Program-made: the position numbers and the translations under genes
DNA from: Chlorokybus atmophyticus
Taxonomy: Eukaryota; Plantae; Mesostigma and Chlorokybus algae
Direction of reading: 5' to 3'
DNA: 45,229 bases
Assembly (NCBI GenBank): GCA_009103225.1
Contig: RHPI01003053.1
Coordinates: forward strand, 35,763-80,991
Shown: positions 10,565 through 45,229 of the stretch, piece by piece
Layout of the letters: every line of letters begins with the position of its first letter
How positions within the stretch are numbered: position 1 is the first letter of the stretch
Notes under the pieces: generated by a model
Databases searched by the model: none
Told to the model about the DNA's origin: nothing
Seen by the model: only the letters and a program-made list of their open reading frames with translations

Positions 10565-10743
10565 TCGCACCAATTGCACAGCAGGGCGCGTGAGAAGATG
10601 GTAGTCGAGGCGGGAGTAGTTCCACAGCTGATGGGGTGACTCTCCGAAGCTTCTCTGGCCAGCAAGCCGAGCCATAGTCGCAATGCAGCTCCCAAAGCAA
10701 CAGAACTACAAGGGGCATTCAAGTCATTAGAGTAGAGGTGCTA

Positions 10744-10990
10744 GGTGGACACCTGGAGGTAGCGGATACAGGCCAATTGGTGCTTCAAAGTACGACGGGA
10801 GAAGGTGTGTACATGGTGGAGCTGAAGGAGGTCTTTCATGTTCCGGGTGCACATGCTAGCCTCTTCTCCACGACGGTCGCATAAAAGACTAAAGCCACAC
10901 TGTTCAGAGAAGGAAAAGAACTTCGTCTTGATATTGATGATAAAATCTGTCTCATCGCGAGAGAACAGCAAGGAGGGGCTACTTGATACA
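10744..10990 (+). pseudogene. Ty1/Copia protease C-terminal fragment
   Basis: Reads GGHLEVADTGQLVLQSTTGEGVYMVELKEVFHVPGAHASLFSTTVA*KTKATLFREGKELRL, parallel to the Copia protease at 29800-30080 (LTDVLYVQGASASLFS). Confidence 0.65.
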
Positions 10991-11034
10991 AGATGCAGAG
11001 ACTAACGAGGCACCGATGGGGATAGTCCCAAAGT

Positions 11035-14322: not shown

Positions 14323-14390
14323 GGCTTGGATCTACTTCAACCACTCGGGCTGCACTTGAATAACCGTTTCAATTGCATTCAGGTACCGAC

Positions 14391-14760
14391 TCAACGCGTC
14401 CGCAACCTTGTTCGATTAGCCGAGCTGTACTTGACTTCGAAGTCGAGGAGTTGAAAGAACTCGAGCCAACGAGCTTGCCGCCGCGAGAGATGAGGCTGCG
14501 GTTGAAGGAACCTCAATGGTGAGTGATCCGTTTCAAGGATGAAGCGCTTGCCAAGAAAACAACGGCATTGCCGTAGCGCCAACACCTGCGCCAGCAATTC
14601 CTTCTTATGAACGGGGTAATTAAGCTCGGCTCCACTCAACTTCTTGCTAAAAAATGCCACCGGTTGCAAGCCGTTGCCATGATCTTGCTGCAAAACAGCT
14701 CCAACGGCCTAATCGAAAGCATCGCATGCCACCACGAAGGGCAATTGCATGTTGGGATGC
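14391..14760 (-). pseudogene. RNase H of chromovirus (frameshifted)
   Basis: FVVACDA..PVAFFSKKLSGAELNYPVHKKELLA..FILETDHSPLRFL..RQARWLEFF. Confidence 0.9.
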
Positions 14761-16022
14761 ACAAGAACGGGTGCTGATGTTAAGGCCACTTTCAAGTCAG
14801 AAAACGCCTTCATTTCAGCCTCCGACCAGCTCCAGCTCACCCCCTTCTTCAACAATGCCGTCAATGGTGATGCCAAGTGCGAGAAGCCTCTTACAAAATT
14901 GCAATAATAGCCAGCCAGCCCTAGGAACGACATGACATCCTTCACGTTCTTCGCGGCAATCCAATCGCGCACCGCCGCAATCTTGTTGGGGTCCGCCTTG
15001 ATCCCTTGCTTGGAGACAAGATGGCCGAGATACTCTACCTCTTGCAGCAAAGAACGGCACTTGTTGAGCTGAGCGAACAAGTTGTTTGCACGTAGACGCT
15101 GCATCACCTCACATAGCAACGCCATGTGCTCGCTCTTGCTCTTGGTATACACGAGAATGTCATCGAGGTACACGAGAACACCCTTGCCAATCAGATCAGC
15201 AAAGACACCGTTCATCAAGGTTTGAAACGTTGCCGGAGCGTTGGTCATCCCAAACGACATTACCAACCACTCGTAATGGCCATAGCAATTGTTGAATGCC
15301 GTTTTCTCAATGTCCTCGGGCGCTACGCGGATCTGATGGTAGCCGCCAGCTAGGTCCAAGCTTGTGAAGAACTCAGCACCTTTTAGCTGCTTCAACAACT
15401 CATCAATGCGAGGCATAGGAAAGACATTCTTCTTCGTGATGTTGTTGAGCGGCCGGTAATCAACGCACATGCGCAAGGCTGCATTCTTCTTGCGCACAAA
15501 CAAGATAGGTGCACCATACGTAGACTTGCTAAGCCTGATGTATCCAAGTTGCAGAAGGTCCTCAACTTGTCTCTCCGCCTCCTCCAGCTCAGCCGGAGAC
15601 AGCTTGTACACTGGTCTGTGCGGCGGCTTGTGCACGCCCTCAACGAGCTCCACATGGTGATCAACGCTGCGCGTGGGTGGCAAACCAGATGGTATCCCGT
15701 CCACCATGATGTCTTTGAACTCCTCAAGCAACTTCTGCACCTCAAGGTCTTCCAAACCCTCCACACCAGTGCCGACTAGCTTCGGATCTGACTTTGACGG
15801 TGTGTCACGCACCATACACAACCATGCATCCTTTACGTCGTTCCCGGACCAGATTTGCTCCATCTCAGCCTCAGAAACTTGTGACACCAGCTCCGGAGCC
15901 TCCCCCCCCAAGCTCAAAGCATGTTGTTGTGCATTTTGCTGGCACGCCTTCACGCCACCTTTCGCGCATGTGATGCATTGTTGGCAGCTGCGACGCAGCT
16001 CACACGCTCTTGAACTAAACAC
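14709..16022 (-). CDS. Reverse transcriptase of chromovirus
   Basis: LRMCVDYRPLN, FTSLDLAGGYHQI, MSFGMTNAPATFQ, VYLDDILVY (15159-15170). Confidence 0.95.
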   Translation of the reverse strand: MFSSRACELRRSCQQCITCAKGGVKACQQNAQQHALSLGGEAPELVSQVSEAEMEQIWSGNDVKDAWLCMVRDTPSKSDPKLVGTGVEGLEDLEVQKLLEEFKDIMVDGIPSGLPPTRSVDHHVELVEGVHKPPHRPVYKLSPAELEEAERQVEDLLQLGYIRLSKSTYGAPILFVRKKNAALRMCVDYRPLNNITKKNVFPMPRIDELLKQLKGAEFFTSLDLAGGYHQIRVAPEDIEKTAFNNCYGHYEWLVMSFGMTNAPATFQTLMNGVFADLIGKGVLVYLDDILVYTKSKSEHMALLCEVMQRLRANNLFAQLNKCRSLLQEVEYLGHLVSKQGIKADPNKIAAVRDWIAAKNVKDVMSFLGLAGYYCNFVRGFSHLASPLTALLKKGVSWSWSEAEMKAFSDLKVALTSAPVLVHPNMQLPFVVACDAFD

Positions 16023-16450
16023 TCACCACGGGAAGAAGCACCCAAGCAAGTCATAGCCATACCACCACCTTCCGGGGCAGCAATTAGGCGCTTCCTCCAA
16101 TTAATGGCGGGGTTATGTGTCGAAAGCCAAGGTAGCCCCAAAATGCCATCAAAGCCGTTGCTGAGCTTGAGGCAGCAAAACCGTAGGCTATCCTTTATCA
16201 TCCCCACATGGACTTCAAGCTCTTTGCTCAGCTTCGCAGCTTCGGTTGGCCCACGGCCGTTTGCGAGAGTCACGGAGCCGGCATTCGCCCACGAAAGCCA
16301 CTTGTGTCGACGCGCAACCTCCCAATTCATGAAGTTGCTGTTCGCGCCGCTATCCACCAGCAATTTGCACTCCACCCAAGGCCCATCACCCTCGCGAATC
16401 ATGGCCGTGACGGTCAGCAGCTGCCTCGCCTCATCGGGCACACAAACCAC
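15950..16450 (-). CDS. Aspartic protease of chromovirus
   Basis: LLVDSGANSNFM and DGILGLPWL motifs. Confidence 0.9.
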   Translation of the reverse strand: MVCVPDEARQLLTVTAMIREGDGPWVECKLLVDSGANSNFMNWEVARRHKWLSWANAGSVTLANGRGPTEAAKLSKELEVHVGMIKDSLRFCCLKLSNGFDGILGLPWLSTHNPAINWRKRLIAAPEGGGMAMTCLGASSRGECLVQERVSCVAAANNASHARKVA

Positions 16451-16575
16451 ACCGTTTCACGTCGCCGTCGCGCACGTATACATGCCGCCAACAGTCACCG
16501 ACGCATCCACGAAAGGCTCTGAACTGTCGACATCAGAAAGAGGCTCCATCTCAACCCCAGCAGCAGCCTCCTTAG

Positions 16576-17617
16576 CTACTGAGGTGAGCCGTTTCCCGAC
16601 TGCAACATCTCCTCCTCCACCGTATTCACACGTCCACCGCCGCGCGTGTTGCGTGCATGTGCAGCCGACTTTGCCTTGAAGATGGGGCAGTTGGAGCGCG
16701 TATGTTCAGTAGAAGAGCACTCCCAACACTTCCAAACTGCCTTGGCATCTTCCCAACCCTTCACACCCCTCTTTGAAGCATGGGGAACACCCAACTCCAT
16801 TGGTGTAGGTCCCGAGCCAGCCCCGCAGCTGTTGCAGCTCCCGAACTAGCTCAAAAAGGTGTGTACGAGCGATACATTCCTCCCCATGACTGATTGAAGC
16901 GCCCACGATCAGTGTCTTTGGCAGTACCCTTGAAGTACAACACATCCGTACGCTCGGCGATGCGAATGGCCTCCGCAAGAGACTTGGCGTCACGAAGCTC
17001 AACTTCCTTGCGACAAAGAGACTTCAACCCGCGCGTATAGCGGTCCAGCTGCTCCTCCTCAGTCATGTTGGGTATGGAGAGCAAAAGACGCTGAAACGCA
17101 GATGTGTAGGCCATCACGGACTGCGTTTGCACAAATGTAGAGAGCTGATCGCGTGCCGTCTTCATGCTTTGCACCGGTACGAACTGTTTCTTCACCTCAG
17201 CGGCCAGCTCAGCCACGGTGACAAAGGGGACCTCGAGACCAGCTTCCACACGAGCACAACGATGACGCCACCACACAAGTGCAGCTCCCTCAAAGAAAGT
17301 AGCAGCCACATCGACATGGAGATGTTCGGGTACCTCGATGAGCTTCAACCATGAAGAGACAGCATACACCCACTCCTCGACGCAGTCACCATCCCTCTAG
17401 CCCTTAAATGGCTTTGGTTTTGGCACTTTCACGTGACGAGAGGCTGGTGAAAGAGCCACAGGTGCAGCAATAGGCGTAGCCGCGCGCGCTTGCGCCAAGA
17501 CTTCTTAAGTTGTGCCGCTTGAGCTTGGGCAGATGCTCGAACACGTTGCAGCTCCTCATGAGCAGCGACCACTTGCTGAAGCTCCACAACACGTGCATCA
17601 TCCATGGTAGCGTCCAT
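16576..17617 (-). pseudogene. Gag of chromovirus (capsid plus CCHC knuckle, frameshifted)
   Basis: AATFFEGAALVWW..QTQSVMAYTSAF..RYTRGLK capsid motifs; CWECSSTEHTRSNC knuckle. Confidence 0.9.
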
Positions 17618-17690
17618 AAACAGAAAAATACCTCACACACCAAAGGTATAGTTAATATCCCTTTAAAACAAGAAACTCAACCCTTCCAAG

Positions 17691-17703
17691 GGCTCCGATG
17701 CCA
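17691..17703 (-). other. Primer-binding site, initiator tRNA-Met type
   Basis: TGGCATCGGAGCC 1 nt inside the 5' LTR; 11/13 match to TGGTATCAGAGCC. Confidence 0.85.
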
Positions 17704-17704
17704 C

Positions 17705-18379
17705 TGTAACGATGCTCGTGCTCACATACGCAGCACACAAGTCATACAACATATGTGTGCAGCTGAGCACAGTCTTCACACCAGAACCTTGCCTTCTCCC
17801 GCGCACGCACGCACGCGTCGAGCACACACACGCACATGAACACTACTACTTCCCACGCCAAGCAAGAACGCAGCACTGTGCCTTAGATCACGCCTCTCTC
17901 AAGCATACACCAGCATACTCACAGCAGAGAGCAGAAAAGAAGAGTTCGTTGTATTACACAGGGTTTCTATGTATACAAGCACAACAACCAAGCAGCCTAA
18001 TAACCAGGCGTTTTGTCGATGATTTACCAGATCTAAAAGACATGTATAAGTGCAGACTGCTACCCCGCGCGTCGGAGTACTTTTCACGTGGCAGCTGACT
18101 GGGCAGTCCTCGTCACAAGGTACTGCGCAGCGGTAGCTGACTATGCAATCCGCGTCACATGGCAGGTACCGTGCAGTCTGGTCAGCTGCGTCACCGCTGC
18201 CTCAGTAGGTCACGTTGCAGGCAGGCAGCTGCCGGGCTGGTCGCAGGCGAGGTCGCGCGCGGCAGCAGAGCACCGCCTGTACAGCTTGTAAAAGCCCTTC
18301 ATAAAGCCTTAATAAAGCAAAGAGGCAAAACACATATTGTACATGTAGTAAATTATGGAAAAAGGTCCAAGCTGGTACA
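17705..18379 (-). repeat. 5' LTR of chromovirus (675 bp)
   Basis: Direct repeat of 12209-12878, adjacent to the PBS. Confidence 0.96.
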
Positions 18380-19225
18380 GATACCCTCATGGACAGATGC
18401 TACATTGACCATCGCCGTACCTCGCGTGACCACCCTCAAGCCGATGGCCTCGCGGAGCATACGGTGCAGACCATAAAGAAGGCACTCCGCAAGTACGTGT
18501 TACAGTATCAGGAAAACACCTGGGATGACCACCTCCCGTGGGTGGCTCTCGGGTGTTGACTGTCAAAACAAGCAGCACTGCGTGAGTACAACCCATAGTA
18601 CTTGCTGTCCCGGCGACAGCCACTGCTTCCCTTCCGTGCATAGCAAGAGGTAAATCGAGTGGTGAACAATCTCAATGACCCCAACTGGACCACAACATCA
18701 CAACGCATGCGGCTCTGTTTGACAGCACCGTTTTCATGGCCTTTAACAACTTGCGCGTAGCACCGTAACATGCTGCGCTACGAGGGCCTGCGCAGTGGTT
18801 TCTACAAGGAACGACAACGTCGGTTCCAGGCAGGAGACTTTGGCTATCGCATGGAAGCCACCCACGACACACTTAACATCTCCATTGGTGATACTATTTA
18901 CAAGGTACTGAACGTGTACCCCACACGTCCTCTAGACCTCCTAAGATAAAACGGCCAAAGGTTAAAGGACAACATGGTGAACTGCGCGCCCTGTCACCCC
19001 ATGCGTAGCGGGGTTCGTGCGCATCATCCACCGTCGCCCCACGCGCAGCACACACGTGAGCGTTGTAGCAGTGCCGACAACGACCCATTAATGATGCTCT
19101 GCGGTGGCTGTAACAAAGGGTTGCACTGCTATTGTCTGAAGCCCCCAATGGATGCAAGGCCCATGGAGGAGTATTGGTGCAATGACTACGCGCCAACGCG
19201 CATCCACACTTACGTTGGGAGCTGA
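18380..19225 (+). pseudogene. Continuation of the older Gypsy integrase and terminal PHD finger
   Basis: After removing the chromovirus and one TSD the frame continues FHTLMDRCYIDHRRTSRDHPQADGLAEHTVQTIKKALRK..WDDHLPWVALG, later RFQAGDF and KDNMVNCAPCH, then (R)ERC..MLCGGCNKGLHCYCLKPP..YWCND(Y) at ~19055-19195. Confidence 0.9.
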
Positions 19226-19554: not shown

Positions 19555-21889
19555 CCGAGACAGCGTGACCTTCGATTCTCTTCGGCCCGACAAGTCAAAG
19601 TAAAGTAGTAGTAAAGTGCTATCCAAACGCACATGACAAATCCTTAACGTATTGATAGATTTGCCTTCATACTGCTGCATATATATGATATGTAATGCAG
19701 GTTAGTGCTAAGTGGGCTCCTATCTCGATTCATAAGAAGTATATTACATCAGATTTATACCACCTTTTTATAGCCTGATTGACGCCCCTTGTTACGTGTT
19801 GCATGTAAACGTGAGACAAATGGCGCCAATTTGAGTGTATCCTTGATTGACCAACATGGATCAGCGCCGAAAAACCCTCAATCTCATCATCCATTCATGC
19901 ATCATGCATTACAATGGCATGAACATGTTATTAATTGCGTTTATGAATGACATCTTTTACCCAACGAGATATGTTATAGCCAATTTGAACATGCGTAATC
20001 TTACCAATATAAAGTGCTTATTGGTATGTACAGTGCGCGCTACATCCTACCTGTCACGATGAAAACTATTCCATGAACAACAACCGTGTGATATTGAATA
20101 TGAAAATCATAGTATAGGCCCGACCCGGTCAATTGCACAATTGTTTCCACGTTGATACAACATGGACAATGTGCAGTGATTGTATGTAAGCAATCGACGT
20201 GAATGTAAATGTGTTATTGCGTATTATTTGTATTATATACCATATTTATCCATCTAGCATTTGGCTTCCCTACACCTGCATGATTATAATGAAACCATTA
20301 AGTAATGATGTTAGCATGAGCTCATCGAACTCACACTGATTGTACTACATCAACAAGTAAACATAGGTAACATTGCCACAATGGAACACTTGAGCCTAAT
20401 CTGATAGTTTTATCATTAACGAGCTGTTAATAATTGACGAGTTGATGCGCTTGTCGTGCGAGGACCCTTGATATCAAATGATGTCGGTTGAATCTTACAC
20501 CCACAACACGTTATTTGATGACAAGCATATATATATGTCGCAAAATCCGATTTCAATAATTTTGACAAAGGCACAGCGTGGCCGAACAGGAAGCCCATAT
20601 GCTGCCGACAGTAGACTTACGAAAGCAGACAATCGCGAACATAATTCCGAGAACTCGGCACACAGCAATAGGCGCAAGGCAAAGTCAATTGAAAAACAAA
20701 CAAGCTGTTAGCAACAGCAATGTTGAAGACATCGAAGACGTTGAAGAAGCGCGGCTGTGGCGTTACATATCCTTAGACTAGCAGTCGCTATTGTAACCAT
20801 CACTTGCTGGCTCGATTATATTAATACCACGTTCCGTTGTATAGCTTCTGATTGAAGCAGTAAGTGTTCAAGTAAACCAGAGAAACCAAGCTAGTCAGTT
20901 GTACGACGTTTAATCCGTTCTATGCTTGCGTATGCATCTGGCTTTAAGTGTATTCACGTACATACGCATCGGTGTTATACGCACTTGTGCTTGTCTGCTT
21001 GCGCTGTGCATATGATCCCTTAGCTTTTGAGCTTATAAAGCTTTATCAGGTATCATTCATCATCAATCGATTGCGCATGCCTCAGTCTCTCTCTTATGCA
21101 AGTTTACACGCTGGCAGTATAATTGATACATCCATTCCGATTGTATTCAGCTTATTAAAACCATAACGATAACAATACTTATAGATTAGAAAGACATATA
21201 GTCTGACTTGGAGATGGTAAAGTTACATTATTGTATTATTGTTTTGCCATTTTCAAGTGCGAATGCATAAGGCTCAAGGTTCAGGGTGGCAGTTACATCC
21301 ACAGTTTACACTCTTGCGATGCATAGCATGTTTAAGTAATGAAGTCCTTACACCTATGGCACGAGTTCAAAAGGCACGGCAGGTTGTTACGTAGTGAACA
21401 GCAATACTTTATCAAACACTTGCCACATTACAACGTTGTACATTACACATAAATAACAACACAATCAACATTTAATATCTCACTTGCGACATTGCTGGGT
21501 TGCACTTAATGAACACAATACATGCATGTTGGCAACGGAATATCTACAGATTGTGTCTTTTTGCTCGAACTCACATCTTGTATTTGTTATTGATAAGATC
21601 ATTGATACATATCATGTGTTGAAAATTGAGCATGCTAAGTTGAGTTTATGTTTATGCACAAATACACAACAGCTGTCCGTTTTTACATATGAGAGTAAAT
21701 GCGGTTTAACTTCACGACACGATGCAATATAACACATAGCATGCATCTACACATAGCATATTATTTCTCGCAATTTGCAATCTTTATCAATATACTTCAC
21801 AATGTACTTGCATGTTTGTGGTACTCTTATTCAATGCTCGGCAATAACAATGATTATGGGTGTTTAACATAGCAATACGGAATAATTGT

Positions 21890-23171
21890 CAAATCAATAA
21901 TTGTCACATGTTGCTACTTATGCACTTTATTCAACAATGCAAGCTATTTCATCTCCACGGTGTGGCATATGCATCATTCTTCGGCCTTTGAAGCAAGGGC
22001 CAGATCATGTGGTATGCTTAATGAATGGCCCACAAGTTCTTGTGTGTGCTTGCCAAGCACACACAAGCACGGCTTGCACAATGGTTGTGTGCATTACGTA
22101 TGTCTTGTCAACACTAGCATCTCTATCTTTTTCAAAGTAAGGTTTATATATCAACAGCGCTAGTGCATGAACGTTAAACCCATGGCACAACATGTTGAAG
22201 AAAGCCAACTAGATTTAACATGCCACATCATGCCACATCCGCAGCCACATACCACACAAACACTCTATTATATAGCTCACAGTGTGTTCATGCGAACATA
22301 TTGCTAACAATGCCTATAAGTGTCGGCGCAGCTGCGGCGAGCCTGGCGTCCTCCTCTATCGTCACCGTCAACATCAGCACAGGGCCCCGCCCAGGCACAG
22401 CCGCCACCGCCGCGGCGCCGCGCTTGCGAGGATCGTCAGTCCTTGCGCTCGCTGCAGCGCGCACGTCAGACAATGTCGGTAAATGGTCAAACCTTCTGGT
22501 AGATGGCAAAGTGGCAGTCCCTGCACGTCGAGCAATATAACCGTGTGTACCACATGCCGTTCAATCGACCCCGCCTTACACAACACGTATCGCACAATAG
22601 CCGCACGCCTATTTCCGCTTGATGCAACCCCCTTTTGCGAGCCTACTGTCAATGGCTTGAGGCTAAAGAGTGGTCAGCGATGTGCTTGCCAGCAGCATTA
22701 CAACGCCCCTCTCAACACACAGTGCGAGAACTCTGAGCGTTTTAGTACCTTTGAGTGTTTTAGTACAGGCACGTACAACAGAATACACCATGTTAATGAT
22801 GATTGTTGATTCACCAAGCATGTTCATGTAGAGAATATAGTGTATAACCAAAATCTTGCTTGCCGGTTGCTTCTGTGACCCCTTTTTGCGTGCACCTTCA
22901 GCATGCGTTTGACACTTTTTGCAGTTTCAAGTTGACGGCATCAAGTGTTGCAACTCCTCCTTTTCAAACTGGCTTCTCCTTTTCTCACGACACAAACCAT
23001 GTCTTTCTCCCCATGCGACAGCAACTGCCGCTGTGTTGGACGTGACAGACACAGCGCAAATTGAGCAGGTCAAGCTGGGTGTATATTTCTGGGTGTGTCA
23101 CTTGGTGTGGTGCATTGCAGCCAGCGCTGACTGTTGATTATGTGAGTTGTTGAAGTTGTGTTGTAGCGGAC
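21890..23171 (+). repeat. ~1.3-kb dispersed repeat, copy 1 (copy 2 at ~35325-36601)
   Basis: Colinear from ataattgtcacatgttgctactta to ttgtagcggac; moderately diverged with small indels. No protein family recognised. Confidence 0.93.
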
Positions 23172-26444: not shown

Positions 26445-27749
26445 GGTTATGACGCTGACCGATTCACTCTGGCACGCAGCAACCACTGAACAGACAATGC
26501 CACGGCTCCTGCCCAAACATGTTGGTTTATATACCACATTCCAGCGCGACGTGGCCTGTTACGCGGCCTGAGGCTGGCTTAGCAACATCTGACAAAGTGG
26601 TGACTGTACTTGTATGAAGCAGCAATGGCGTATGGTAACTTGCCACGCACTGCCGGATAGCTCTGACAGCTCAGCACAGATGTAACACCAGAGGTACTAC
26701 GTAAGATCACGCGCGCCGTTTGGAGCCGCTCGCCTCTCGAGCCCAGAAGTCTAGTAAGCACATTTCAAATCGATCAACAAGTCTGCGTGGGTTGCTTACT
26801 ATTCCGTCGGTCGTTGACAAGGTTCCGCACTGCTGCATGTTGCCAGAGCGCCAACCTGGCTTCAAGCCTTGAAGTTCAAGGGCAAAGCATCTTCCAGCCG
26901 TCTAACTCGCTGGCTTGTTATGGCCAATGCTGCGTCTGTAGTCATGCGTAATGCTTTGAAGGCGTAACATAAACTGGTAATGGTTTTCTTTTCTTGCAGC
27001 TGCTACGAGCACATCCCATCCAATATAGCCATCATAAGCCATCATAGCAGAAATTCATATCGATTAGTGTCGCCGCCTCAGACGTTCGATAATTGCAATT
27101 AAAACATCACATTAATACACAATCTTGTACATTATGCTGGAACCGACAGGTACCGTATATACCCAAACACAGTCCCCCCCCCCCCCAACCACAGTCCCCC
27201 CCCAGCGTTTGTAAAGGGGGGGACAGAGTTTTGACTTAGGAGTCCCCCCTCCATTTGTAAGTTTACCTTTAAGGGGACTGTACCACATATATGGTATACA
27301 TATTACACATATATGCATACATGTATGTCTGATATGTAGGTTACATGTATACTTATATTTTTAAAATGTATGATATATAATCGCATATCGGATATCGCAA
27401 ATCTTATATAATGTATATGTATAAATATATACACACACACGTGATACAAAATGATATACCCATGCATTGTGTACAAAATATACATATGCAACTATGTACA
27501 CAAACATATGAGTTGCAACAATATGGTACAAATACTATTTATTTGTATACATACTGATAGTGTACGTATGTATCATTTGTGTTTATCATTAACAGCGTGA
27601 TACATGTATATGCTTAAAATGCTAATAAAATTCCCTTTTTGTGGGCCATGGTGGCACAATTGTTGCTTATCTTATAGGCTGCGTCAGCCTGCTGCCGTTG
27701 CTGGCCTGCCGGCACCACTATAAGTTACGCTACTGACTGTGACCAATAG

Positions 27750-28388
27750 TGTCATGCCTATTGTCCTCGCATGCCAGCCTTCATCGAGCATGCTCACGTC
27801 AAGACCCTCCCCCGGCCTACCAGCCTACACGCGTCACGTCTCAGTGGTTAGGTTGTGAATCTAGACTAGCTCATGACCATAGCCTACAAAGGCATCGCGC
27901 GTAGCTGTTCAGTTGTACGGTTGGTTATTAATTTTGTTCTTTTAATTAGGAGGTGTTCGTGGGAATAGCCTCGATATGACTATTAGCTAATGTTCTAAAC
28001 AGTCTTAATTTGACATGTATAAGAAGTTGAAGTGTTCACCAAACCAGCTAGTGACACTGTGAGTGAGAAAATGGAAAGAGCTAAGAAAGCTAAGAGCTTG
28101 TGAAGCAACTTTAACTACGAACACGCCATCCCACTTTTCAAGAATCCCCTCACCGTGTGAGGGATTCTTGAAAATTAGGAGCCTGTGCATGCTCTTGTGT
28201 AATGTGCTTGTTATTCCTGTGAAAATTGGTGTGCTTGGTTGCATCAGTTAGAGCATTGCATCCACATGTTGCTTACTCATTCACCTCACTTCACAAAGTG
28301 AGATATTCCCACTCATGCGAATAACTGTAAACAGCGCTACCTATAATAGTGCTTGTTGAGTCATTATCACCCTCTTTGCTCAAGTGAG
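27750..28388 (+). mobile_element. LTR/leader remnant of the DNMT-Gypsy family
   Basis: Starts tgtcatgcc, colinear with 833-1480 and 36602-37280; ends at caccctctttgctcaagtgag where a Copia-like element begins. Confidence 0.88.
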
Positions 28389-35183: not shown

Positions 35184-35299
35184 ACCCCCCACCTCAGCAC
35201 CAACCAACGACGCAACCGGAGCTTGACACGAGCTCGGTCCTGCAACTGCAGCCCTACAATGGCTGCCATGTTTGCTGCTAACGCGCTGCGCTCAGGGCG
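35184..35299 (+). mobile_element. Short fragment of the DNMT-Gypsy family RH-INT linker
   Basis: Matches 11339-11450 and 44843-44955. Confidence 0.85.
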
Positions 35300-35324
35300 A
35301 ATACCAGACAGCACTTTCATTGAA

Positions 35325-36601
35325 AAATTGATAATTGTCACATGTTGCTACTTATACACTTTATTCAACAATGCAAGCTAATTCATCTCCACGGTGTGGC
35401 ATATGCATAATTCTTCGGCCTTTGAGTTAAAGGACTAGATCATGTGGCATGCTTGATAAAAGGCCCACGAGTTCTTGTGTGTGCCTGCCAAGCATGGCTT
35501 GCACATTGGTTGTGTGCATTACGTATGTCTTATCAACATCAGCATCTCTATCGTTTCAAAAGTCCAAGGTTTATGTATCAACAACGCTAGTACATGCACC
35601 TTTAACCATGGCACAATATATCGAAGAAAAACGACTAGACTCAACGTGCCACAGCATGCCATATCCGCAGCAACATAACACACAAACATATTATCATATG
35701 GCTCACAGCGTGTTTGTGCAAACATATTGCTAACCATGCCTATAACAAGTTCCGCTCCGCAGCTGCGGCGAGCATGGCGTTTTCCTCCATTGTCACTATG
35801 AGCATCGGCTTGGGACCCCGCTCAGGCACAGCCGCCACCACGGCGCCGTGCTTGCGAGGATCGCAAGTCCTTGCGCTCGCTGGAGCGCGCATGTCAGACG
35901 CTATTGCTAATTGGTCAAAATTCCTGGTAGACAGCGACGTGGCAGTCCCTGCACGTCGAGCAATATAACCATGTGTACCACATGCCTTTCAATCGACCCC
36001 GCCTTACACATCACTTAACGCACAATAGCCGCACGCTTTTTGCTTGATACAACCCCCTTTGGCGAGCCAATTGTCAATGGCTTAAGTCTATAACGTGGTA
36101 TAGAGTGGTATAGAGTGGTCAGCGATGTGCTCGCAAGCAGCATAACAACGCCTTGCTCAACACACAGTGCGAGAACTTTGAGCGTTTTGGTAACTTTGGG
36201 CGTTTAGTACAGGCACGTACAACAGAATACTCCATGTAAATAATTGTTGATTCACCAAGAATGTTCATGAGAGGAGAGAACATAATGTTTTACCAACAGC
36301 TTGCTTGCCGGTTGCTTCTGTGACCCCTTCTTGCGTGCACCTTCAGCATGCGTTTGACACTTTTTGCAGTTTTAAGTTGACGGCATCAAGTGTTGAAACT
36401 GCTCCTTTTCAGACTGGCTTCTTCTTCTTCACGACAAACAATAGCTTTCTCCCCATGCAATAGCAACTGCCGCTGTGCTTGACGTGACAGACACTGCGCA
36501 AGTTGAGCAGGTCGAGCGGGGCGTGTATGTTTCTGGGTGTGTCACTTGGTGTGGTGCATTGCAGCCAACGCTGACTATTGATTGTGTGGGTTGTAGCGGA
36601 C
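35325..36601 (+). repeat. ~1.3-kb dispersed repeat, copy 2, cut by the DNMT-Gypsy insertion
   Basis: Homology to 21890-23171 stops at gtagcggac, and tgtcatgcc (LTR start) follows immediately. Confidence 0.93.
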
Positions 36602-37463
36602 TGTCATGCCATCTACCCTCGCATGCCAGTTCTTCTCAAGCATGCCTACACCCAGCCCCACGCCCGGGCTACCAGCATGAAGACCGCGCGAGCCTCAGCC
36701 TACTGCTAGCTACTGTACCACTCATGTAGCATGTAGCTAGGGCTACTTTATAGACCTGTCTGTAGGGACCGCGCGTAGCTGATCAGTTGTAAGTCTGTTA
36801 AGAACACATGTGCTATATCGAGTCTTAGGAGATTTCCGAAATAGCATGAGGCCTCGATGTGACCGTTGGCCTAATGCCCGCGTGGCACTGCACAGTCATG
36901 ATTTGACATGTATAAGTAGGAAGTCACGTCACCAGACTGGCTGGTGACACTGTAAGTGAGTACTAGGAGTACTAGGAGTACTAAGAAGTAAAGACTCTGT
37001 TTCTAAAGAGCTTGTGAAGCGACTTGAACTGGAAGCACGCTGCCCCGGTTGCCAAGAATTCCCTTACTGCGTGAGACACGGTGCATGCTCTTGTGCGCTG
37101 TGCCTGCCATTGCTGTGAGCTTGACGGTGGTGTGTTGTTTCAGTAGTCAGGGTGTTGTATCCACGTGTTGCACACTCATTCACCTCACTTAACAGTGTAT
37201 CATTCTATCCACTCATGCAAAGAACTGTGTCCACAGCACTACCTATCGTAGTGGCTTGTTGACTTACAGTGTCACCCTCTTTGCACAAGTGAGTGTGTTG
37301 CAATCTGCATCAGATAGTGCAGTCTGCACCCAGGGATACATCGCTGGGCATTCGTTATCATTGTTATCACATAGTGCGCACAAGCACTAGTGTTGGGTGG
37401 TAACAGCATCAGGATAGACGGTAGAGCACAAGCACTCTACCCTTTCACCTCTGGACCAGCTGT
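36602..37463 (+). repeat. 5' LTR plus leader of the DNMT-Gypsy element (LTR 3' boundary not resolved)
   Basis: Begins TGTCATGCC; homologous to 833-1660 and 27750-28388; contains 3x GAGTACTAR at 36958-36984. No canonical PBS recognised. Confidence 0.8.
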
Positions 37464-40400
37464 ATGAGCAGGCCCACCCCGTTCTCCCCAATAGACGAGG
37501 GTGACCTCAGCAGTTGGAGCCCAACCACCAACCTCACCTACGAGCGGACCAGTGACGGAAGCATCGACCGCAGCAGCAGAGGCTCGCGCTCCATCTCCAG
37601 CTTCACCCCGCTCCACTCTACTCCTCGTCATCCAGCTTCTCCACTATCATCGGACGGCGACGACAACGAGATGGAATCTTCCAGTTCAACCACATCCCTG
37701 CGCTTCTCCGGACGTGCCGGCACCACCTCGCTGGATGAGTTCATCATCAAGTTCCACTCCAAGATGCGGCAGCAAGCACTGAAGAACAAAGACTGGTCAG
37801 ATGAGATCTCTTTCCACATTGCTGCTCAGTATCTTGATCATGAAGCACACGATGTCTGGAAGTCCGTTGCTGAACTGCATCGAGTAGACGGCTATGGCGA
37901 GCTTGCCAGCACCATAGCATCTGCATCCCTGCATCGTCCAGCAGGTGTCATTCCACCTGCCACTTCAGTTGCAGTAACAGGCTTGACCATAGCTGCAGCT
38001 CTCAAGCAGGCAGAGGAGGAGGAACCAGAGTTGGTACTGGTCTACTTGACCCCTGCAGAAGTTGAGTATAAAGAGGCCACACGTCGAGTCCGCATCCTTG
38101 ACCGTTCTGCCATTATCATTGAGGAACAAAAAGCTGTACAGCAAGCGGCAGCCGCAGAGTGGGGTACTCCTCTACCTCCAGCAACACCTGGCTCTCGTGC
38201 AGGAGGCAGCGCTTTCACCCTCGGGTCAGTAGCACTGCGCGCACCAGCCATCACCGTAGGTGCTGCCATCTCTGATTCTCCACTCAAGGACCTGTACGCT
38301 GCCCTGCGCCGTACCTTCCCTCCTCAGACCACCAGCAAGGTTGAGGAGCTGAGACGCTTCCGACGCAAGCCCAATGAGGATCCCCTCCGCTTGTACTCCA
38401 GACTGGAAGGTCTGCTGAAGGACACTGACTACAAGATTGTCAGTGAGGAGGCTGCTGCAGTGATATACGTCAATGAGTTGGATGCTGCTCTGAGCGAGTC
38501 GACACGCCTGACTCTGAACTACAGCAGGCCCCTTGGCTACACCCTCAAAGAAGCCTTCGAGACTGCACAAGCCATCCACAAGCGCTTGGTGTATGAGAAG
38601 GCAGTGCTGGACACCAACCGCAGCGCCGTACGGCCTGTAGTCAGCACGACAACTGAGCCTCCTCGCCGCGACCGTGGCCGGGACGCTCCACCAGCACGCG
38701 ACAAAGGGAAACGGTCAGCTCATGCTGCACTTGCTGCCCCTGTGCTGTGTCATCGCTGTGGACGGCATGGGCACTACCAAAAGGAGTGCACCGAAGAATA
38801 CTCAACTTTGGTTTGCGACCACTGTCACAAGACTGGTCATTTGGAGTCAGTCTGCTGGCTCAAGTTCTCAAAGTTGAGGCCCGCCAACAGCTACAACCAC
38901 AACTACCTCGGTGGCTACAACAGAAACAACACCGGGGGCCACACTGGCAACAACTTCAGTGGCTACAACAGCAACAACACTGGGGGCCACACTGGCAACC
39001 ACTTCAGTGGCTACAATAGCAACAACACTGGAGCCCACAACAGCAACAACGCTGGTGGCAACAACAACAACAACAACAACGCCAGTGTTCGCAAGGAAGA
39101 GCAAGGCTACAGGGGGAAGAACAGACCTCGTCAGCGTAAGGGACCAGAGACACGTCCGCGCGCTGCTGCTGTTGCCGCCAAGGCTTCAGCCAACCCACCA
39201 GCTGATGACCATATGGCAGCCCTCATGGCACATATGGCACGCTTGGAGGAAGACAAGGAGCAGGACTACCGCGCCTGCTACGCTGCCCGATGGGCGCTGA
39301 TGGCTGCAAAACGCGAGAGAGACAGGAACACTCCGTCCCGCGTGCAACCATCACGACGAGCACGAGGGGAAGCTGCAACAACATCAGCAGGCACCTCCTC
39401 CGAAGCCACCAGTGGTGCTGCCTCCGCAGCGACAGCCACACCGGCTACAACGTCGACTCCACCAACGTCAGCAGTACCCACTCCAGTTGCACCACAATCT
39501 GGTACACCGGTGGGCACCGTGACGCCGACGCTGGTGAGCACACTGGCAGCAGCCGCCATCACTACCGAATCTGCACCAGTGGGCGGTGCACTTCCCACTG
39601 CAGCAATGCCTCTGTCCGTAGGCGTTAAGACAACTCTCGCACCACCGACCGATACCGTCGCAACTGCCACAATGGCCATCGTCGAGCCCGCTGTCTCTGC
39701 AGCAACGCGCGCAGCCACTCTGCCCGCTCTCGACGTCACTCAGGCTGTCCCAACTGGTCAGCAAGCTGAACGAGCATGGGAAACCATCCTGCGCGGAGCA
39801 GACCCCACTACCATCGCCTTCGGTCGGGGGGGGGAGCGCACCACGCGTGTCGCCCGCGATAATCGCGTCTTCCCGCTACCAGAGGTTCACACCCTTCCAG
39901 CACTCACTCAACACCAGTTAGAAGATGAGATCCTTGCTGGCACTGCACCTCCGATGCGTGACAGGGTGTTTTTGATCAGCTACAGCCCACCTGTAGTGTT
40001 GGAGTTGGGTCTGCAGCTGTTCTGGGCGTTGCACAACAACATGCAGACCGCCCCGCGCCAGCCTGCACGCATGCCAACCACCACCTTTGAACCCAGCCCG
40101 TTGGACACGTATCGGGACCGCCGAGACGCCGTCCAGCAGCGCATCGCCGACGCAGCCAACCTGCCTTTGGGCACTGATGAAGCACTCGGACCTCCTACAA
40201 CTGCTCGTCTTCATCAGCGCTACCACGCACTGGAACAAGCATATCATTGGCGACAGGATCAAGCTGCCGCCATTGCTGCACGTGAGCAAGCTCTTGAAGC
40301 TACACGTGCACCAATACCTCAGTCACCAACTGCTGGTCCATCCTCCAGCACCACTCCGCTCTTCGTCGAGACCAACTCTGACCAAGCGAGGGCGTTGGCT

Positions 40401-43400
40401 CAACAAACCAGGGGGGTGATCGCCCCGTTGCTGCCTGCGCTGGTGGAGGATCTACCTGAGGACCAAAGGGAGCCAGGGAGGGGCTACCTTACACCACAAG
40501 GGTGTACGCAAAGAGATGGAGCAGGACTGGTTGGAGAGCAACAACTACGCACTGCTCTGTTGCGACAAGCAACCATGCTGCATCGTCAAGAAGGCATTGG
40601 ACTCCGGCAGATGCTTGGGATGCGAGACAATGGAAACTCGGCACGCGCACGGTTAGTGACGTGGCTGGTCACCAACCATCCCGCAGTCCCGTTGTTCGCT
40701 TTCGGCGCCAGAATAGCGTGGGTGGACGCATTCCTTCGCTCCATACGACAAGCCTATGATGAAGTGGCTTCCGCCGCCACCGACACTCTGGAGGGAGCTC
40801 TGGAGGCGATACTGAGTTTGCCAGGAGTGGAGGCAGGACGTCAGCGCAGGCGCATCGCCGCTGCTTACGAGCAGCATGTCCAACAGCCAGAGACCCGCCT
40901 CACTGTACGCACACGAGCAATAACAGTGCTGAAAGTGGGAGTGGTCAACGGCAGATGGGATGCTTACATGGCAGGGATCCTCAGGGTGCCCACCATCACT
41001 CACGACATGGGGGCGCGGCTCCTACGCGCAGTGTACCTGCAGCCCATGCCTCAGAACCATCGCTATATAGACTTGGACAACAATGCGACGGCGACATGGG
41101 AAGGTACACTAGTCAGAGAGGCAGCCCATGCTGTGCGATGGACCTATGCAGAGGAGCAGGCTGCACGAGAGGCAGTCCCGCAAACACCAGGTCCTCCAGG
41201 GTTCCCGCCACAGCCACTGGCCACTCCTCCTGGCATGACAACAGCTGCACAGAGGGTCAACCCTCCTGCACCTCCACTTGGACAGGTTGCAGCAGCACCT
41301 CCAGTGCCTAGGCCACCACGCGTGTACCAGCAACCGCGACAAGGACGGTTTGGACAAAGCCGAGGACAAGGAGGCCCACAAGATCCAGCAGGCAGAGGAG
41401 CCCTGGCTGCCCTACGGTCAGGCCCCACAGATGAGAGTAAAGCAACAGTCTCTCCACGCAAGAGGTTCCGTCGCTTCAAGAGGCTGCGCATCAACGCCAA
41501 TGCAGCCATGATCGCCAACCAAGGCAAGCACGTGACCGTCAATGGGCGGGCACCCAAACGCGTGATGCTGGACACTGGAGCACAGCCTGTCATCATTGGG
41601 CGCTATCTCGCACGAGATCTCGGCATCACCAGCGCTGAGCTGCTTCCCTGTCCCTACCAGCTGGACACCGCAACCGGCAACCGCGACAAGGTACTCGGCC
41701 TTACCAAGCAGGCTGTGAGCATCCGCCTCACCGGACTAAACCCTTCCCACAGCACCGAGATTGTACAAAGGTGTGTGGTCACCGATGCCGGGTTCTTTGA
41801 CCTACTGTTGGGACAGGACTGCAACTTCCCTGTCGGCATGGGGCTGGACTGCTGGACTGAGCAGGCATGGTTTCGACCACATTGGGATGAGGATGATGGA
41901 GAGGAGCAGGGATTCCTACCTCTCGAATTGGTGGCCAAGGCCCACTCGCAACGAAGATCGGCCGCAGCAGCCAACTACAATTCTACAAAACGCTCACGTG
42001 TGCCTCGTGCCCGAACGCAGCCAAGGACAACTGCAACGAGCTCGAGCCCGAGCCTAAACGCTGAAGAGGACTCTCATACACCGTACGATGAGTCTCAGAA
42101 AACTGTCACCAAAGAAGTGGCCTTTCAGGAGCCATCCGAGCGTCGCTGGAGCGCACAAGTAGCAGCACACATGCTGCTGACCAGGCCTCAGCTCACTGCA
42201 CACTTCCCTGTCTACAAAGACCAGGCTACAGTGCAGGAGCAGTACCATATAGCTACGGGAGTTGTGGAGTTCCACATGTTCCGCCGACAACAAGGCATCA
42301 CTGTGCTGGAGCTGTTCGGAGGCATAGGCAGTGGGCTTGCGGCTGTCCTCAACACAGGAACAACAGTCACCAAGTACCTCTACTGTGACCCTGACCCTCA
42401 TGCACAGGAGGCTCTGAGCCATCATTTACGACAGCTGCACCAGCGCTACCCGCAGCAGCTACCGATGTCGGCACTGCAAGGGAGCCAGAAGGCTCTACCG
42501 CAGGACATCCGCTGGATTACCAAGGATCACCTGCAGGCAGTCGGCAACATTGACCTGCTGATAGCAGGATGGGAGTGTCAAGGGCACTCCAGGGCAGGCA
42601 GAGGCCAAGGGCTCTCTGATCCTCGCTCACAGCTGTTCTGGGAGCTAATGAGAGTCATCAAACTCCTACAGACCAGTCAGATTGCTAGACCCTTGGGGTA
42701 CATCATCGAGAATGTGCACTCCGAGGATGACAAGCGGCATCACGTCGCCAGGGCCTATCGGCAAGTATGCTCCTTGCTGGGGCATCCTCTCAAAATCAAT
42801 GCCGCGCGTCATGGATCTCGTGCACACCGCGTCCGCACCAAGTGGACCAACCTGGCCATTGTGGAAGACTTGTTTCTGGCAGAGTACCTATACAGCAATC
42901 GGCCACGAAATCTCGTCGTCGATGACATCCTGGACCCTGGACGCACAGCGCAACCAGTTACACGCCTTGACCCTCACCACTTCTACCAGTGCAACCAGCC
43001 TGGTCAGCCGCGCCGCGCGCTACCTACACTTGTATCCTATCCGGGCTCCTACGCGTTCCGCAATGCAGGCGACGGCATGGTGTTAGACTCCAACACTGGA
43101 CAGCTGGAAGAACCCAACGCTCGTGAGCGCGAGCGTGCTATGGGATTCTTTCCAGGCAGCATCACAGGCTCCACACTGACAACCAGTCAACAATGTCAGT
43201 TGTTAGGCTGCGCCATGGATCGAAACAGCATGGTGTGGTACTTGGAAATGTGCTTTGCTCTCCAGGACCGCCATGTGTCCTTCCAGGAGCTCGAACACCT
43301 GGTTGGGGGGTGGATTGCTCGCTTTTCAGAGACCAAAGAAGCACACACCGCCCTCGAGACCGCCCACATGGAGGAGCAGGCAGCAGTCATTGTGGAAGAC

Positions 43401-43664
43401 ATTCCAGTGGTCGCCAACGCTACCTCGTGGTCCCACGCCATTGGACCGCTGGCCACAGGCCAGACTCGAGAGCAACTCGAGGCTCTCCTCAACAAGTGGA
43501 GGAGCCAATTCAGCTTCAGTGTGAAGGAGCTGGGCATCTGCTCAGCATACCAGATGGACATTGAACTAGTGGACACCGAACCGGTGTTCAGAAGACAGTA
43601 CCGCCTCTCCAAGCTAGAAGAAGAGTTGGTGGAACAGAGGTGCAAGGCGCTGCTGATGAGATGA
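37464..43664 (+). CDS. Gag - protease - C5 DNA methyltransferase polyprotein (2066 aa)
   Basis: Knuckles CHRCGRHGHYQKEC (38748) and CDHCHKTGHLESVC (38814); protease MLDTGA (41571); DNMT motifs (next feature); pre-RT YRLS motif near the end. Confidence 0.95.
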   Translation: MSRPTPFSPIDEGDLSSWSPTTNLTYERTSDGSIDRSSRGSRSISSFTPLHSTPRHPASPLSSDGDDNEMESSSSTTSLRFSGRAGTTSLDEFIIKFHSKMRQQALKNKDWSDEISFHIAAQYLDHEAHDVWKSVAELHRVDGYGELASTIASASLHRPAGVIPPATSVAVTGLTIAAALKQAEEEEPELVLVYLTPAEVEYKEATRRVRILDRSAIIIEEQKAVQQAAAAEWGTPLPPATPGSRAGGSAFTLGSVALRAPAITVGAAISDSPLKDLYAALRRTFPPQTTSKVEELRRFRRKPNEDPLRLYSRLEGLLKDTDYKIVSEEAAAVIYVNELDAALSESTRLTLNYSRPLGYTLKEAFETAQAIHKRLVYEKAVLDTNRSAVRPVVSTTTEPPRRDRGRDAPPARDKGKRSAHAALAAPVLCHRCGRHGHYQKECTEEYSTLVCDHCHKTGHLESVCWLKFSKLRPANSYNHNYLGGYNRNNTGGHTGNNFSGYNSNNTGGHTGNHFSGYNSNNTGAHNSNNAGGNNNNNNNASVRKEEQGYRGKNRPRQRKGPETRPRAAAVAAKASANPPADDHMAALMAHMARLEEDKEQDYRACYAARWALMAAKRERDRNTPSRVQPSRRARGEAATTSAGTSSEATSGAASAATATPATTSTPPTSAVPTPVAPQSGTPVGTVTPTLVSTLAAAAITTESAPVGGALPTAAMPLSVGVKTTLAPPTDTVATATMAIVEPAVSAATRAATLPALDVTQAVPTGQQAERAWETILRGADPTTIAFGRGGERTTRVARDNRVFPLPEVHTLPALTQHQLEDEILAGTAPPMRDRVFLISYSPPVVLELGLQLFWALHNNMQTAPRQPARMPTTTFEPSPLDTYRDRRDAVQQRIADAANLPLGTDEALGPPTTARLHQRYHALEQAYHWRQDQAAAIAAREQALEATRAPIPQSPTAGPSSSTTPLFVETNSDQARALAQQTRGVIAPLLPALVEDLPEDQREPGRGYLTPQGCTQRDGAGLVGEQQLRTALLRQATMLHRQEGIGLRQMLGMRDNGNSARARLVTWLVTNHPAVPLFAFGARIAWVDAFLRSIRQAYDEVASAATDTLEGALEAILSLPGVEAGRQRRRIAAAYEQHVQQPETRLTVRTRAITVLKVGVVNGRWDAYMAGILRVPTITHDMGARLLRAVYLQPMPQNHRYIDLDNNATATWEGTLVREAAHAVRWTYAEEQAAREAVPQTPGPPGFPPQPLATPPGMTTAAQRVNPPAPPLGQVAAAPPVPRPPRVYQQPRQGRFGQSRGQGGPQDPAGRGALAALRSGPTDESKATVSPRKRFRRFKRLRINANAAMIANQGKHVTVNGRAPKRVMLDTGAQPVIIGRYLARDLGITSAELLPCPYQLDTATGNRDKVLGLTKQAVSIRLTGLNPSHSTEIVQRCVVTDAGFFDLLLGQDCNFPVGMGLDCWTEQAWFRPHWDEDDGEEQGFLPLELVAKAHSQRRSAAAANYNSTKRSRVPRARTQPRTTATSSSPSLNAEEDSHTPYDESQKTVTKEVAFQEPSERRWSAQVAAHMLLTRPQLTAHFPVYKDQATVQEQYHIATGVVEFHMFRRQQGITVLELFGGIGSGLAAVLNTGTTVTKYLYCDPDPHAQEALSHHLRQLHQRYPQQLPMSALQGSQKALPQDIRWITKDHLQAVGNIDLLIAGWECQGHSRAGRGQGLSDPRSQLFWELMRVIKLLQTSQIARPLGYIIENVHSEDDKRHHVARAYRQVCSLLGHPLKINAARHGSRAHRVRTKWTNLAIVEDLFLAEYLYSNRPRNLVVDDILDPGRTAQPVTRLDPHHFYQCNQPGQPRRALPTLVSYPGSYAFRNAGDGMVLDSNTGQLEEPNARERERAMGFFPGSITGSTLTTSQQCQLLGCAMDRNSMVWYLEMCFALQDRHVSFQELEHLVGGWIARFSETKEAHTALETAHMEEQAAVIVEDIPVVANATSWSHAIGPLATGQTREQLEALLNKWRSQFSFSVKELGICSAYQMDIELVDTEPVFRRQYRLSKLEEELVEQRCKALLMR
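42294..43260 (+). other. DNMT3-like C5 cytosine methyltransferase domain within the polyprotein
   Basis: Motif I VLELFGGIG (42315), IV DLLIAGWECQG (Cys 42576), V GLSDPRSQLF, VI YIIENV (42708), VIII AHRVRTKWTNL (42828), IX ERERAMGF (43125), X LLGCAM (43206); non-permuted order. Confidence 0.92.
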
Positions 43665-45229
43665 GGGCCTGATCGAGGAGTCCACATCGGACTTTGCGGC
43701 CGCGACCGTCATGCCCCTGAAGAAAGATTCAGCAGGCAACTGGACAGACCGGCGCATGTGTGGCGACTATCGCCCCCTCAACAACAAGACCAAGCAGGAC
43801 CGGTATCCAATGCCTACCGCAGAAGGCATCTTTGACGATGTAGGAGACTGCACGGTCTTTAGTATCCTGGATATGCGCCAAGGGTACAACCAGATCGCCA
43901 TCAAGGAGGAGGACAAGCACAAGACTTCCTTCTGGGGAAACCGGCAGCTGTACCAGTGGAAGGTCATGCCCTTCGGGCTGAAGAACGCTCCGGCCAAGTT
44001 CCAGCGCGTCATGGACAAAGCCCTCAAGGGGTTGGACTTCGCACGCTGCTACATCGACGACATCCTCATCTTCAGTCACAGCAATGAGGAGCATCTCCAG
44101 CACATCGAAGAGGTGCTACAGAGGCTGAAGGAAGTCGGGATGACGGTGCACCCTGACAAGTGCACCTTCTTCACCCACAAGGTACCCTACCTAGGACACA
44201 TGATTGTGCCCCATGGTGTGTACGTACAGCAGGCCAAAGTGGAGGCACTGGTGGCTATCCCTGCCCCCACAGACCTCACGCGGCTGCGGGCCTTCCTCGG
44301 CCTTGCCAACTATTACCGACGGTTTGTCAAAGACTTTGCCAAGATCGCAAGGCCTCTCAGCGAACTACTGAAGAAGGACACCGAGTTCTTGTGGAAGGAG
44401 GCACAACAGGAGGCCTTTCAGGAACTGAAGCTCCGCCTCACCACAGCTCCCATTCTGCAACGCCCTGACTACACCAGGTCGTTCATCCTGCACACAGACT
44501 GGAGCAAGCTCGGCATGGGGGCCGTGCTCGTACAGCATGACAACAACAAGAAGGAGCGCGTAGTGTCGTACGCCAGCCGCAGCAACAACAGTGCTGAGGC
44601 CAACTACAGCAGCTACGAAGGGGAGTGTCTCGCCGCAGTGTGGGCCATCTCCTTCTTCCGACCCTTCCTGTTTGGACGGCAGTTCCAACTGGTCACTGAC
44701 CATCAACCCCTCAAGTGGCTAATGAACAACCAGCACTTGACAGGAAAGTTAGCACGATGGGCGCTGCTGCTCCAGGAGTACGACTTCGAGGTGGAACACC
44801 GCGCAGGCCTTGCCAACCAGGATGCGGATGGCCTCAGCCGTAACCCCCACCTCAGCACCAACGACGCCACAGGCGCCCGACATGAGTTGGGTCCTACAGC
44901 TGCACCTGCAGGTGTGGCCACCATGTTCGCTGTCGCTGCGCTACGCTCAGGACGCAGGACTCAGATCGCTGAGGCAGCAGCAGACGGGGACATGCCCGCT
45001 CTCGAGCCCGCCATCACCACCACCGATCCTTTATCAGAAGAAGCAATCGCTGCCGACCCTGAGGTGGATGATGAGGAGCTGGCACCCACCGACACACGAC
45101 AAGACATCTGGCTGGACGAGCCATCCCTTGCACTGCTTCAGACCAGACAACTTCCAGCAGGCATGAGCGCACGCGAGAAGGACCGCGTCCGACAACGCAC
45201 TCAGCGTTACCGCTGGGCCAACGACAGGC
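43660..45229 (+). CDS. Reverse transcriptase - RNase H (+1 frame relative to ORF1; open to window end)
   Basis: DEGLIEESTS, RMCGDYRPLN, LDMRQGYNQI, MPFGLKNAP, YIDD (44050-44061), HTDWSKLGMGAVL, YEGECLA, TDHQPLKWL; no stop seen before 45229. Confidence 0.94.

Follow-up and report, generated by a model that had tools for sequence, protein, structure and literature searches.

We report here a retroelement of the streptophyte alga Chlorokybus atmophyticus (class Chlorokybophyceae) that carries its own cytosine methyltransferase. It lies within the last 8 kb of a 45,229-nucleotide stretch of contig RHPI01003053.1 (positions 35,763 to 80,991 of the forward strand; hereafter the window, whose first letter is position 1 of all coordinates given for it), where a 2066-codon open frame occupies 37464-43664 on the forward strand. 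We show that the element, a young copy of Ty3/Gypsy type that is nearly intact, has a domain of the DNMT3 type between its protease and its reverse transcriptase (RT). It is one member of a large and old family of Gypsy-type elements with a DNMT, distributed over green plants and algae, and comparison across this family shows that the domain is a standing part of the element that appears to be kept under selection for catalysis. The reading that we favor, with a probability of roughly 0.6, is that of a Gypsy copy with a standing, constrained DNMT3 domain that would be active in de novo C5 methylation of its own complementary DNA (cDNA) or of its insertion.

The domain is confirmed as a DNMT3-type C5 methyltransferase by its sequence and its predicted fold. 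A first-pass annotation, made from the letters alone, had placed an apparently intact methyltransferase at 42294-43260, and this span falls inside the folded domain at ~42261-43283. A hidden Markov model (HMM) search with Pfam PF00145 (DNA_methylase), which the annotation had proposed as a check, gives E 1.9e-10 and 41.1 bits against a cut-off of 22, in the same frame as the zinc knuckle and the protease. The motifs, all located by position in the translated frame, are the following:

42306-42335 (+), motif I, LELFGGIGSG
42561-42590 (+), motif IV, the catalytic loop, IAGWECQGHS
42699-42722 (+), motif VI, YIIENVHS
42816-42854 (+), motif VIII, SRAHRVRTKWTNL
43125-43160 (+), motif IX, ERERAMGFFPGS
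43197-43229 (+), motif X-like, QLLGCAMDRNS

The motif order is canonical and nonpermuted, and every motif named in the annotation is present in that order and in frame with Gag and protease, with the reservation that motif IV has Glu-Cys and not Pro-Cys. Motif X is degenerate, reading LLGCAMD instead of the GN type. We show that the predicted enzyme has all the residues needed for binding of S-adenosylmethionine (SAM) and attack on cytosine C5.

Searched as a single domain against solved structures, it matches DNMT3C, DNMT3A, and DNMT3B best (E 4e-8 to 2e-6), with HaeIII (2e-5), HhaI (5e-4), and DRM2 (0.2) lower in the same search. A family profile was derived from an alignment, A1, of 93 family members less than 55% identical to one another. 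Against the PDB, this profile matches DNMT3A at 4.8e-27, DNMT3B and DNMT3C at ~3e-24, the tobacco and Arabidopsis DRM enzymes at 5e-17 to 9e-15, HhaI at 9e-13, and DNMT2 at ~4e-8, and it has no match to DNMT1 there at E up to 0.01. The DNMT3A match is collinear in three stretches and DRM is matched only via its C-terminal half, which bears out the annotation's claim that the order is not permuted as in DRM2; the likeness of motif VIII to DNMT3, also claimed, is visible in the alignment to DNMT3C and DNMT3A. An AlphaFold2 model of the domain, made with A1, has a mean local confidence (pLDDT) of 95.8 and a global score (pTM) of 0.93, and in a Foldseek search of the PDB, DNMT3A, DNMT3B, and DNMT3C make up the whole of its best 50 matches, with target-normalized TM scores of 0.81-0.84 and ~20% identity. 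Chance is excluded as the source of these matches, since the profile reaches E 4.8e-27 with DNMT3A and the model E 4.8e-19 with Foldseek. The DNMT3-like label is based on match ranking and fold, together with a published tree in which the retroelement copies of Klebsormidium form a divergent clade beside DNMT3 (PMC5890265). A protein atlas annotates the domain as 'DNA methylase, Streptophyta or viruses'.

The departure in the catalytic loop is shared by much of the family. Motif IV reads G-W-E-C-Q-G, so that the catalytic Cys is kept and the Pro before it has become Glu; among the A1 members, this residue is Glu in 53 of 93, Pro in 32, Asp in 4, and Ser in 4. Invariant in all 93 are the Gly of motif I, the catalytic Cys, the Glu of ENV, both Arg residues of motif VIII, and a Thr of the target-recognition region, and this region, between motifs VIII and IX, is long and well conserved in the family. 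On the domain tree, the Glu/Pro state changes about 20 times, and the well-supported branches alone force at least 3 to 4 changes. Because the position alternates repeatedly while the rest of the loop is fixed, we read it as a tolerant one and not a sign of decay. As far as can be read from these sequences, the Glu beside the Cys is not a lesion of the studied copy, and a tolerant position in a strongly constrained active site argues for a working enzyme.

Mapping the family beyond Chlorokybus, we found that it is very large. Searched exhaustively with HMMER, 1.84 billion cluster representatives gave 2633 matches at E<0.001 and 253 at E<1e-30; the 150 matches listed all have E 2.1e-43 or better, and those examined are of the retroelement type. 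Metagenomes are the source of most members. Neither the word-index searches nor the exhaustive HMMER search found a protein more than 51% identical to the Chlorokybus DNMT domain, and no Klebsormidium or cellular DNMT3 sequence stands among the word-index matches or the best 150 HMMER matches. Two domain orders occur: ~60 of 237 fetched proteins have protease-DNMT-RT-RNaseH-integrase, as in Chlorokybus, and ~95 of the 237 have RT-RNaseH-DNMT-integrase. Named hosts of the first order are Marchantia polymorpha, Calypogeia fissa, and Closterium NIES-53, -54, and -68, and those of the second are only chlorophytes, Haematococcus lacustris and Scenedesmus sp. PABB004. Examples of the second order are P0020, P0104 (Haematococcus), P0110 (Scenedesmus), and ~90 others. 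In the full-length relatives checked, the C terminus of the integrase is a PHD finger.

The switch of domain order is one change on the DNMT tree, on a weak branch, and on the RT-RNaseH tree a 99% branch sets 15 of 16 first-order rows apart from the second order. That the DNMT and RT trees agree on the order split suggests that the DNMT has long been inherited together with the rest of the element, and since DNMT and RT diverged together, the two orders are old sister lineages. P0234, tried as a possible outgroup for the tree, was rejected as a truncated bacterial-type enzyme.

The type of element is already described, as the first-pass annotation had correctly stated. De Mendoza et al. (2018, Nat Commun 9:1341; PMC5890265) reported a Gypsy element with a Dnmt3 domain, KnitGypsy-Dnmt3, in the charophyte Klebsormidium nitens and DIRS elements with Dnmt3 domains in Symbiodinium, and placed the Klebsormidium capture in 'the K. 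nitens lineage'; the group's paper of 2025 does no more than repeat that report. Our literature search found no report of a DNMT-bearing Gypsy element in Chlorokybus, liverworts, Closterium, or chlorophytes. Chlorokybus is thus a new host, and the annotation's suggestion of a new lineage or host holds up, with an identity ceiling of 51% in the DNMT domain and no paper found for this alga. The breadth within the green lineage, the two domain orders, and the recurrent Glu-for-Pro replacement go beyond the published picture. More tentatively, all of this could reflect a single ancient green-line lineage with PHD integrases (in the relatives checked), one domain order in the named streptophytes (liverworts and algae down to the earliest-branching one) and the other in the named chlorophytes, a working DNMT3 kept for hundreds of millions of years, and repeated change from Pro to Glu, a combination that we regard as possible and still doubtful.

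Two database entries of the family deserve separate mention. The full-length relative P0009 lies on a metagenome contig (L001, 1-18357; ENA ERZ25067493, ctg159469_5x_c) that repeats an 8262-nt unit 2.2 times head to tail at 99.8% identity, and no long terminal repeat (LTR) was found inside the unit. Either a tandem array or a circular form of the DNA could account for this contig; head-to-tail units without an LTR fit the DIRS-like, circle-derived layout reported in 2018. P0195, a 455-residue 'DNA cytosine methyltransferase' in a metagenome bin of Candidatus Obscuribacterales, is 48% identical to the retroelement domain, with the family's loop G-W-P-C-Q-G-H-S, and is probably eukaryotic transposon DNA mis-binned as bacterial.

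The studied copy reads, in the window, Gag, spacer, protease, DNMT, RT, and RNase H, with the following features:

36763..37463 (+), 5' noncoding leader, 5' boundary approximate (direct-repeat families D6 and D10, self-BLAST)
37464..43664 (+), open reading frame (ORF) for Gag, spacer, protease, DNMT, and the first, N-terminal part of RT (ORF listing, Pfam)
38748..38855 (+), two Gag CCHC zinc knuckles, residues 429-442 and 451-464 (motif positions, Pfam zf-CCHC)
38860..41490 (+), Gag-to-protease spacer, ~880 residues (ORF listing, Pfam)
41532..41819 (+), aspartic protease, residues 1357-1452 (Pfam PF13650, Asp_protease_2, E 2.1e-7; PF13975)
~42261..43283 (+), DNMT3-type C5 cytosine methyltransferase, residues 1600-1940 (Pfam, PDB searches, AlphaFold2, Foldseek)
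43584..44205 (+), RT, split by a frame break (Pfam RVT_1, E 1.4e-34)
43655..43658 (+), frame break of four extra letters (comparison with sister contigs)
44392..44781 (+), RNase H (Pfam RT_RNaseH and RT_RNaseH_2, E 3.9e-37 and 2.9e-34)
44782..45229 (+), linker and first residues before the zinc-binding region of the integrase, cut by the window end (tblastn)

The active-site D-T-G of the protease (41571-41579) and the YIDD box of the RT (44050) are intact. The Pfam zf-CCHC match (residues 429-444) is weak, at E 0.0054 and below the cut-off; the Gag core at 38280-38858 can be aligned to the relatives P0009 and P0024. The spacer is partly low-complexity, N/G/T-rich and A/T/P-rich, has no match in a Pfam search, and corresponds to ~240 residues in P0009; its part at ~39700-41400 resembles ordinary protein sequence. 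At the other end, residues 1058-1099 of P0020 match 45103-45228 in tblastn. The integrase, PHD finger, and 3' repeats of the studied copy lie beyond the window end, and in P0009 Pfam places an rve integrase and then the PHD after RNase H.

The leader repeat is common to a degraded second copy (980-1479) and a solo fragment (27889-28388), and self-BLAST pairs 1188-3008 with 37011-38831 and 27999-28388 with 36892-37293. No tRNA-Met primer-binding site was found near the leader. The two repeats upstream of the studied copy (35319-36594 and 36763-37293) match other parts of the window, and their assignment to this copy is uncertain. Repeats at 35319-36594, 21885-23150, 585-1479, and 27498-28383 were compared for an A/B layout, with only the 5' side of the studied copy inside the window.

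The annotation's placement of the DNMT between protease and RT stands, but in the studied copy the RT is out of frame by four letters at 43655. ORF1 stops at 43662-43664 and the RT continues in the next frame from 43660, so that RT-RNaseH reads from there to the window end (43660-45228), one frame over from ORF1; with the four letters removed, the frame is continuous. They are absent from all covering public contigs of runs X1, X2, and X4, which are 95-99% identical. The window's own four-letter version was seen in no contig shown, and contigs cannot prove absence. A single Gag-Pol frame, as in the full-length P0009, is the family's normal state, and the break is either a private insertion or an assembly error.

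In the proposed mechanism, the domain would be active as a SAM-dependent cytosine-C5 DNA methyltransferase, made within Gag-Pol, and would enter the particle or the pre-integration complex. There it may methylate de novo the element's new cDNA or the DNA at a new insertion, so that a fresh copy would arrive already marked. Such a mark could make the copy look like host DNA or gene body, lower its expression and the damage it causes, or protect the cDNA. The first-pass annotation had proposed that the enzyme could be released by the element's protease, packaged, and act on cDNA or target site, a mechanism already suggested in the 2018 paper (PMC5890265). That paper also supplies a precedent, in that related DIRS-borne Dnmt3 domains of Symbiodinium methylated CG de novo in yeast and the KnitGypsy-Dnmt3 domains have a Ka/Ks below 0.2 (PMC5890265). 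One may compare, as an analogy, the PHD finger on the integrase of the relatives with the ADD domain by which cellular DNMT3 reads histones.

Several observations weigh against this reading. The Glu stands in place of the near-universal Pro of Pro-Cys, and the studied copy as assembled cannot make the RT because of the four-letter break. In the published yeast assay, the KnitGypsy-Dnmt3 domain of Klebsormidium gave no methylation, a result that the authors call 'inconclusive' (PMC5890265). No RNA runs holding the element were found. The CpG observed/expected ratio is 0.65-0.70 in the element and 0.55-0.94 in the flanks, and since the element is no different from its flanks, its sequence carries no signature of self-methylation. 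Of the 40 differences from sister contigs that were listed, 18 are synonymous where 31% would be expected, a weak enrichment (p 0.04), and a single one falls in the DNMT domain. Transitions over 39300-45229 are lopsided, the studied copy having A/T where the sister has G/C in 63 cases and the reverse in 39 for X1, and in 57 and 29 cases for X2; only 6 of 22 listed A/T-versus-G/C cases are at CpG, so this gives no clear methylation signature.

The alternatives differ in what the domain would do. It may have lost catalysis and serve as a DNA-binding or chromatin-tethering pseudo-enzyme like DNMT3L, for example as an anchor between the pre-integration complex and DNA. In its favor are the Glu-Cys of the catalytic loop, a motif X that is degenerate (LLGCAMD and not the GN type) as in Klebsormidium, and the inactivity of KnitGypsy-Dnmt3 in yeast, but a binding module would need neither the SAM-binding Gly of motif I nor the catalytic Cys, ENV Glu, or motif VIII RxR, all of which are invariant in the 93 members and lost in DNMT3L. 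Alternation of Glu and Pro in an otherwise fixed loop points in addition to tolerance and not decay, and we consider a pseudo-enzyme unlikely. Somewhat less probable still is an enzyme that methylates RNA as DNMT2 does, placing 5-methylcytosine (m5C) on the element's genomic RNA or on the tRNA primer. RNA would be the first substrate met inside the particle, and de Mendoza et al. raised RNA methylation for LINE-borne DNMTs (PMC5890265); however, sequence and fold are nearest to DNMT3, a DNA enzyme, DNMT2 falls ~19 orders of magnitude behind it in the profile search and is absent from the 50 best structural matches, and the long, conserved target-recognition region between motifs VIII and IX also speaks against RNA as the target.

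There is hardly any room for an accidental recent capture of a host gene by a single copy, or for an assembly chimera. We found nothing in favor of either; in a second, older family copy within the window no DNMT is recognizable, but that copy has lost its protease and RT too. The same domain stands at the same place in hundreds of related polyproteins, and sister contigs from three runs, 95-99% identical, cover the DNMT region and the regions of the protease-DNMT and DNMT-RT junctions. The annotation had noted that absence of the domain from other copies would make it a one-off capture, and the very large family, together with these sister contigs, refutes that. Active de novo methylation by a standing, constrained domain is the explanation that we retain as the favored one.

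The same window holds further elements. The older, degraded copy of the DNMT family lies at ~585-19225, with a Gag (1658-3003) 50-79% identical in protein and RNase H-integrase-PHD pieces at 11026-12212 and 18383-19222; in the 8 kb between Gag and the RNase H pieces, neither protease, DNMT, nor RT is recognizable. A (CT)n microsatellite of ~1.4 kb (6979-8363), ending at a single N, lies inside this copy. Its integrase is split by a precisely inserted, complete-looking chromovirus of 6.2 kb (12207-18379, reverse strand) with Gag, protease, RT, RNase H, and an integrase with SH3 and chromodomain, LTRs of 672 nt with 92.7% identity to each other, and a tRNA-Met-like primer site (17692-17703). The RT of the studied element is 37.6% identical to that of this nested chromovirus. 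A 120-nt fragment (35186-35306) directly upstream of the 35319-36594 repeat shares 86% identity with the linker between RNase H and integrase at 11339-11456 in the older copy. It may be a trace of a third copy with an internal deletion, or of a rearrangement.

Since 2018 it has been an open question why a selfish element carries the enzyme with which its hosts silence it, and the only green-lineage example so far, that of Klebsormidium, showed no activity in the sole assay tried. The Chlorokybus element adds a further, nearly intact example from an alga that can be cultured and that branches at the base of the streptophytes, and a family of more than 250 diverse clusters reveals which residues are indispensable. 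Its spread over liverworts, Closterium, Haematococcus, and Scenedesmus argues against a recent, lineage-specific capture. The Glu/Pro alternation beside the Cys bears both on the activity of the enzyme and on how much the catalytic loop of C5 methyltransferases tolerates. If the single ancient green-line lineage were true, this loop would work unlike that of every characterized C5 methyltransferase, and the elements would be a possible long-term reservoir, as donor or recipient, of green-lineage DNMT3 genes.

Of the known systems compared, KnitGypsy-Dnmt3 likewise has a nonpermuted DNMT3-related domain in frame in a Gypsy-type pol, is intronless, resides in a streptophyte alga, and keeps the key catalytic residues with a poorly conserved motif X (PMC5890265). 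Its Ka/Ks (ratio of nonsynonymous to synonymous substitution rates) is below 0.2, and it has DIRS-like A-coding-B-A-B repeats (PMC5890265); in likeness to this, the relative on contig L001 is tandem or circular with no LTR inside the unit. The host is different, and the family seen here is far wider than the K. nitens lineage; the likeness is drawn from the published description, the best identity of the Chlorokybus domain to any protein found being 51%, none of them from Klebsormidium. SymbioDIRS-Dnmt3 of Symbiodinium shares a DNMT3-type domain inside Pol and two alternative domain orders, but it is a DIRS element with a tyrosine recombinase in dinoflagellates, in contrast to the DDE integrase (rve) with PHD of the relatives and the Gypsy RT-RNaseH seen here. 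Chromoviruses have in common with the family the Ty3/Gypsy RT-RNaseH-integrase core and a chromatin reader at the C terminus of the integrase, and differ in having a chromodomain and not a PHD finger, no DNMT, ordinary LTRs, and a tRNA-Met-like primer site. Among cellular enzymes, plant DRM2 is DNMT3-related and belongs to the second-best match group, but it is circularly permuted, with profile positions 12-151 matching DRM residues 225-354. DNMT3A, DNMT3B, and DNMT3C are the best match in sequence and structure and share the motif order, motif VIII (AHR-R--W-NL), and the C-terminal LLG helix; unlike them, the Chlorokybus element has neither PWWP nor ADD by Pfam, reads Glu-Cys for Pro-Cys, and carries its domain inside a retroelement polyprotein. 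The cellular catalytic domain is ~55 residues shorter, and most of the surplus of the element follows motif II or falls in the target-recognition region.

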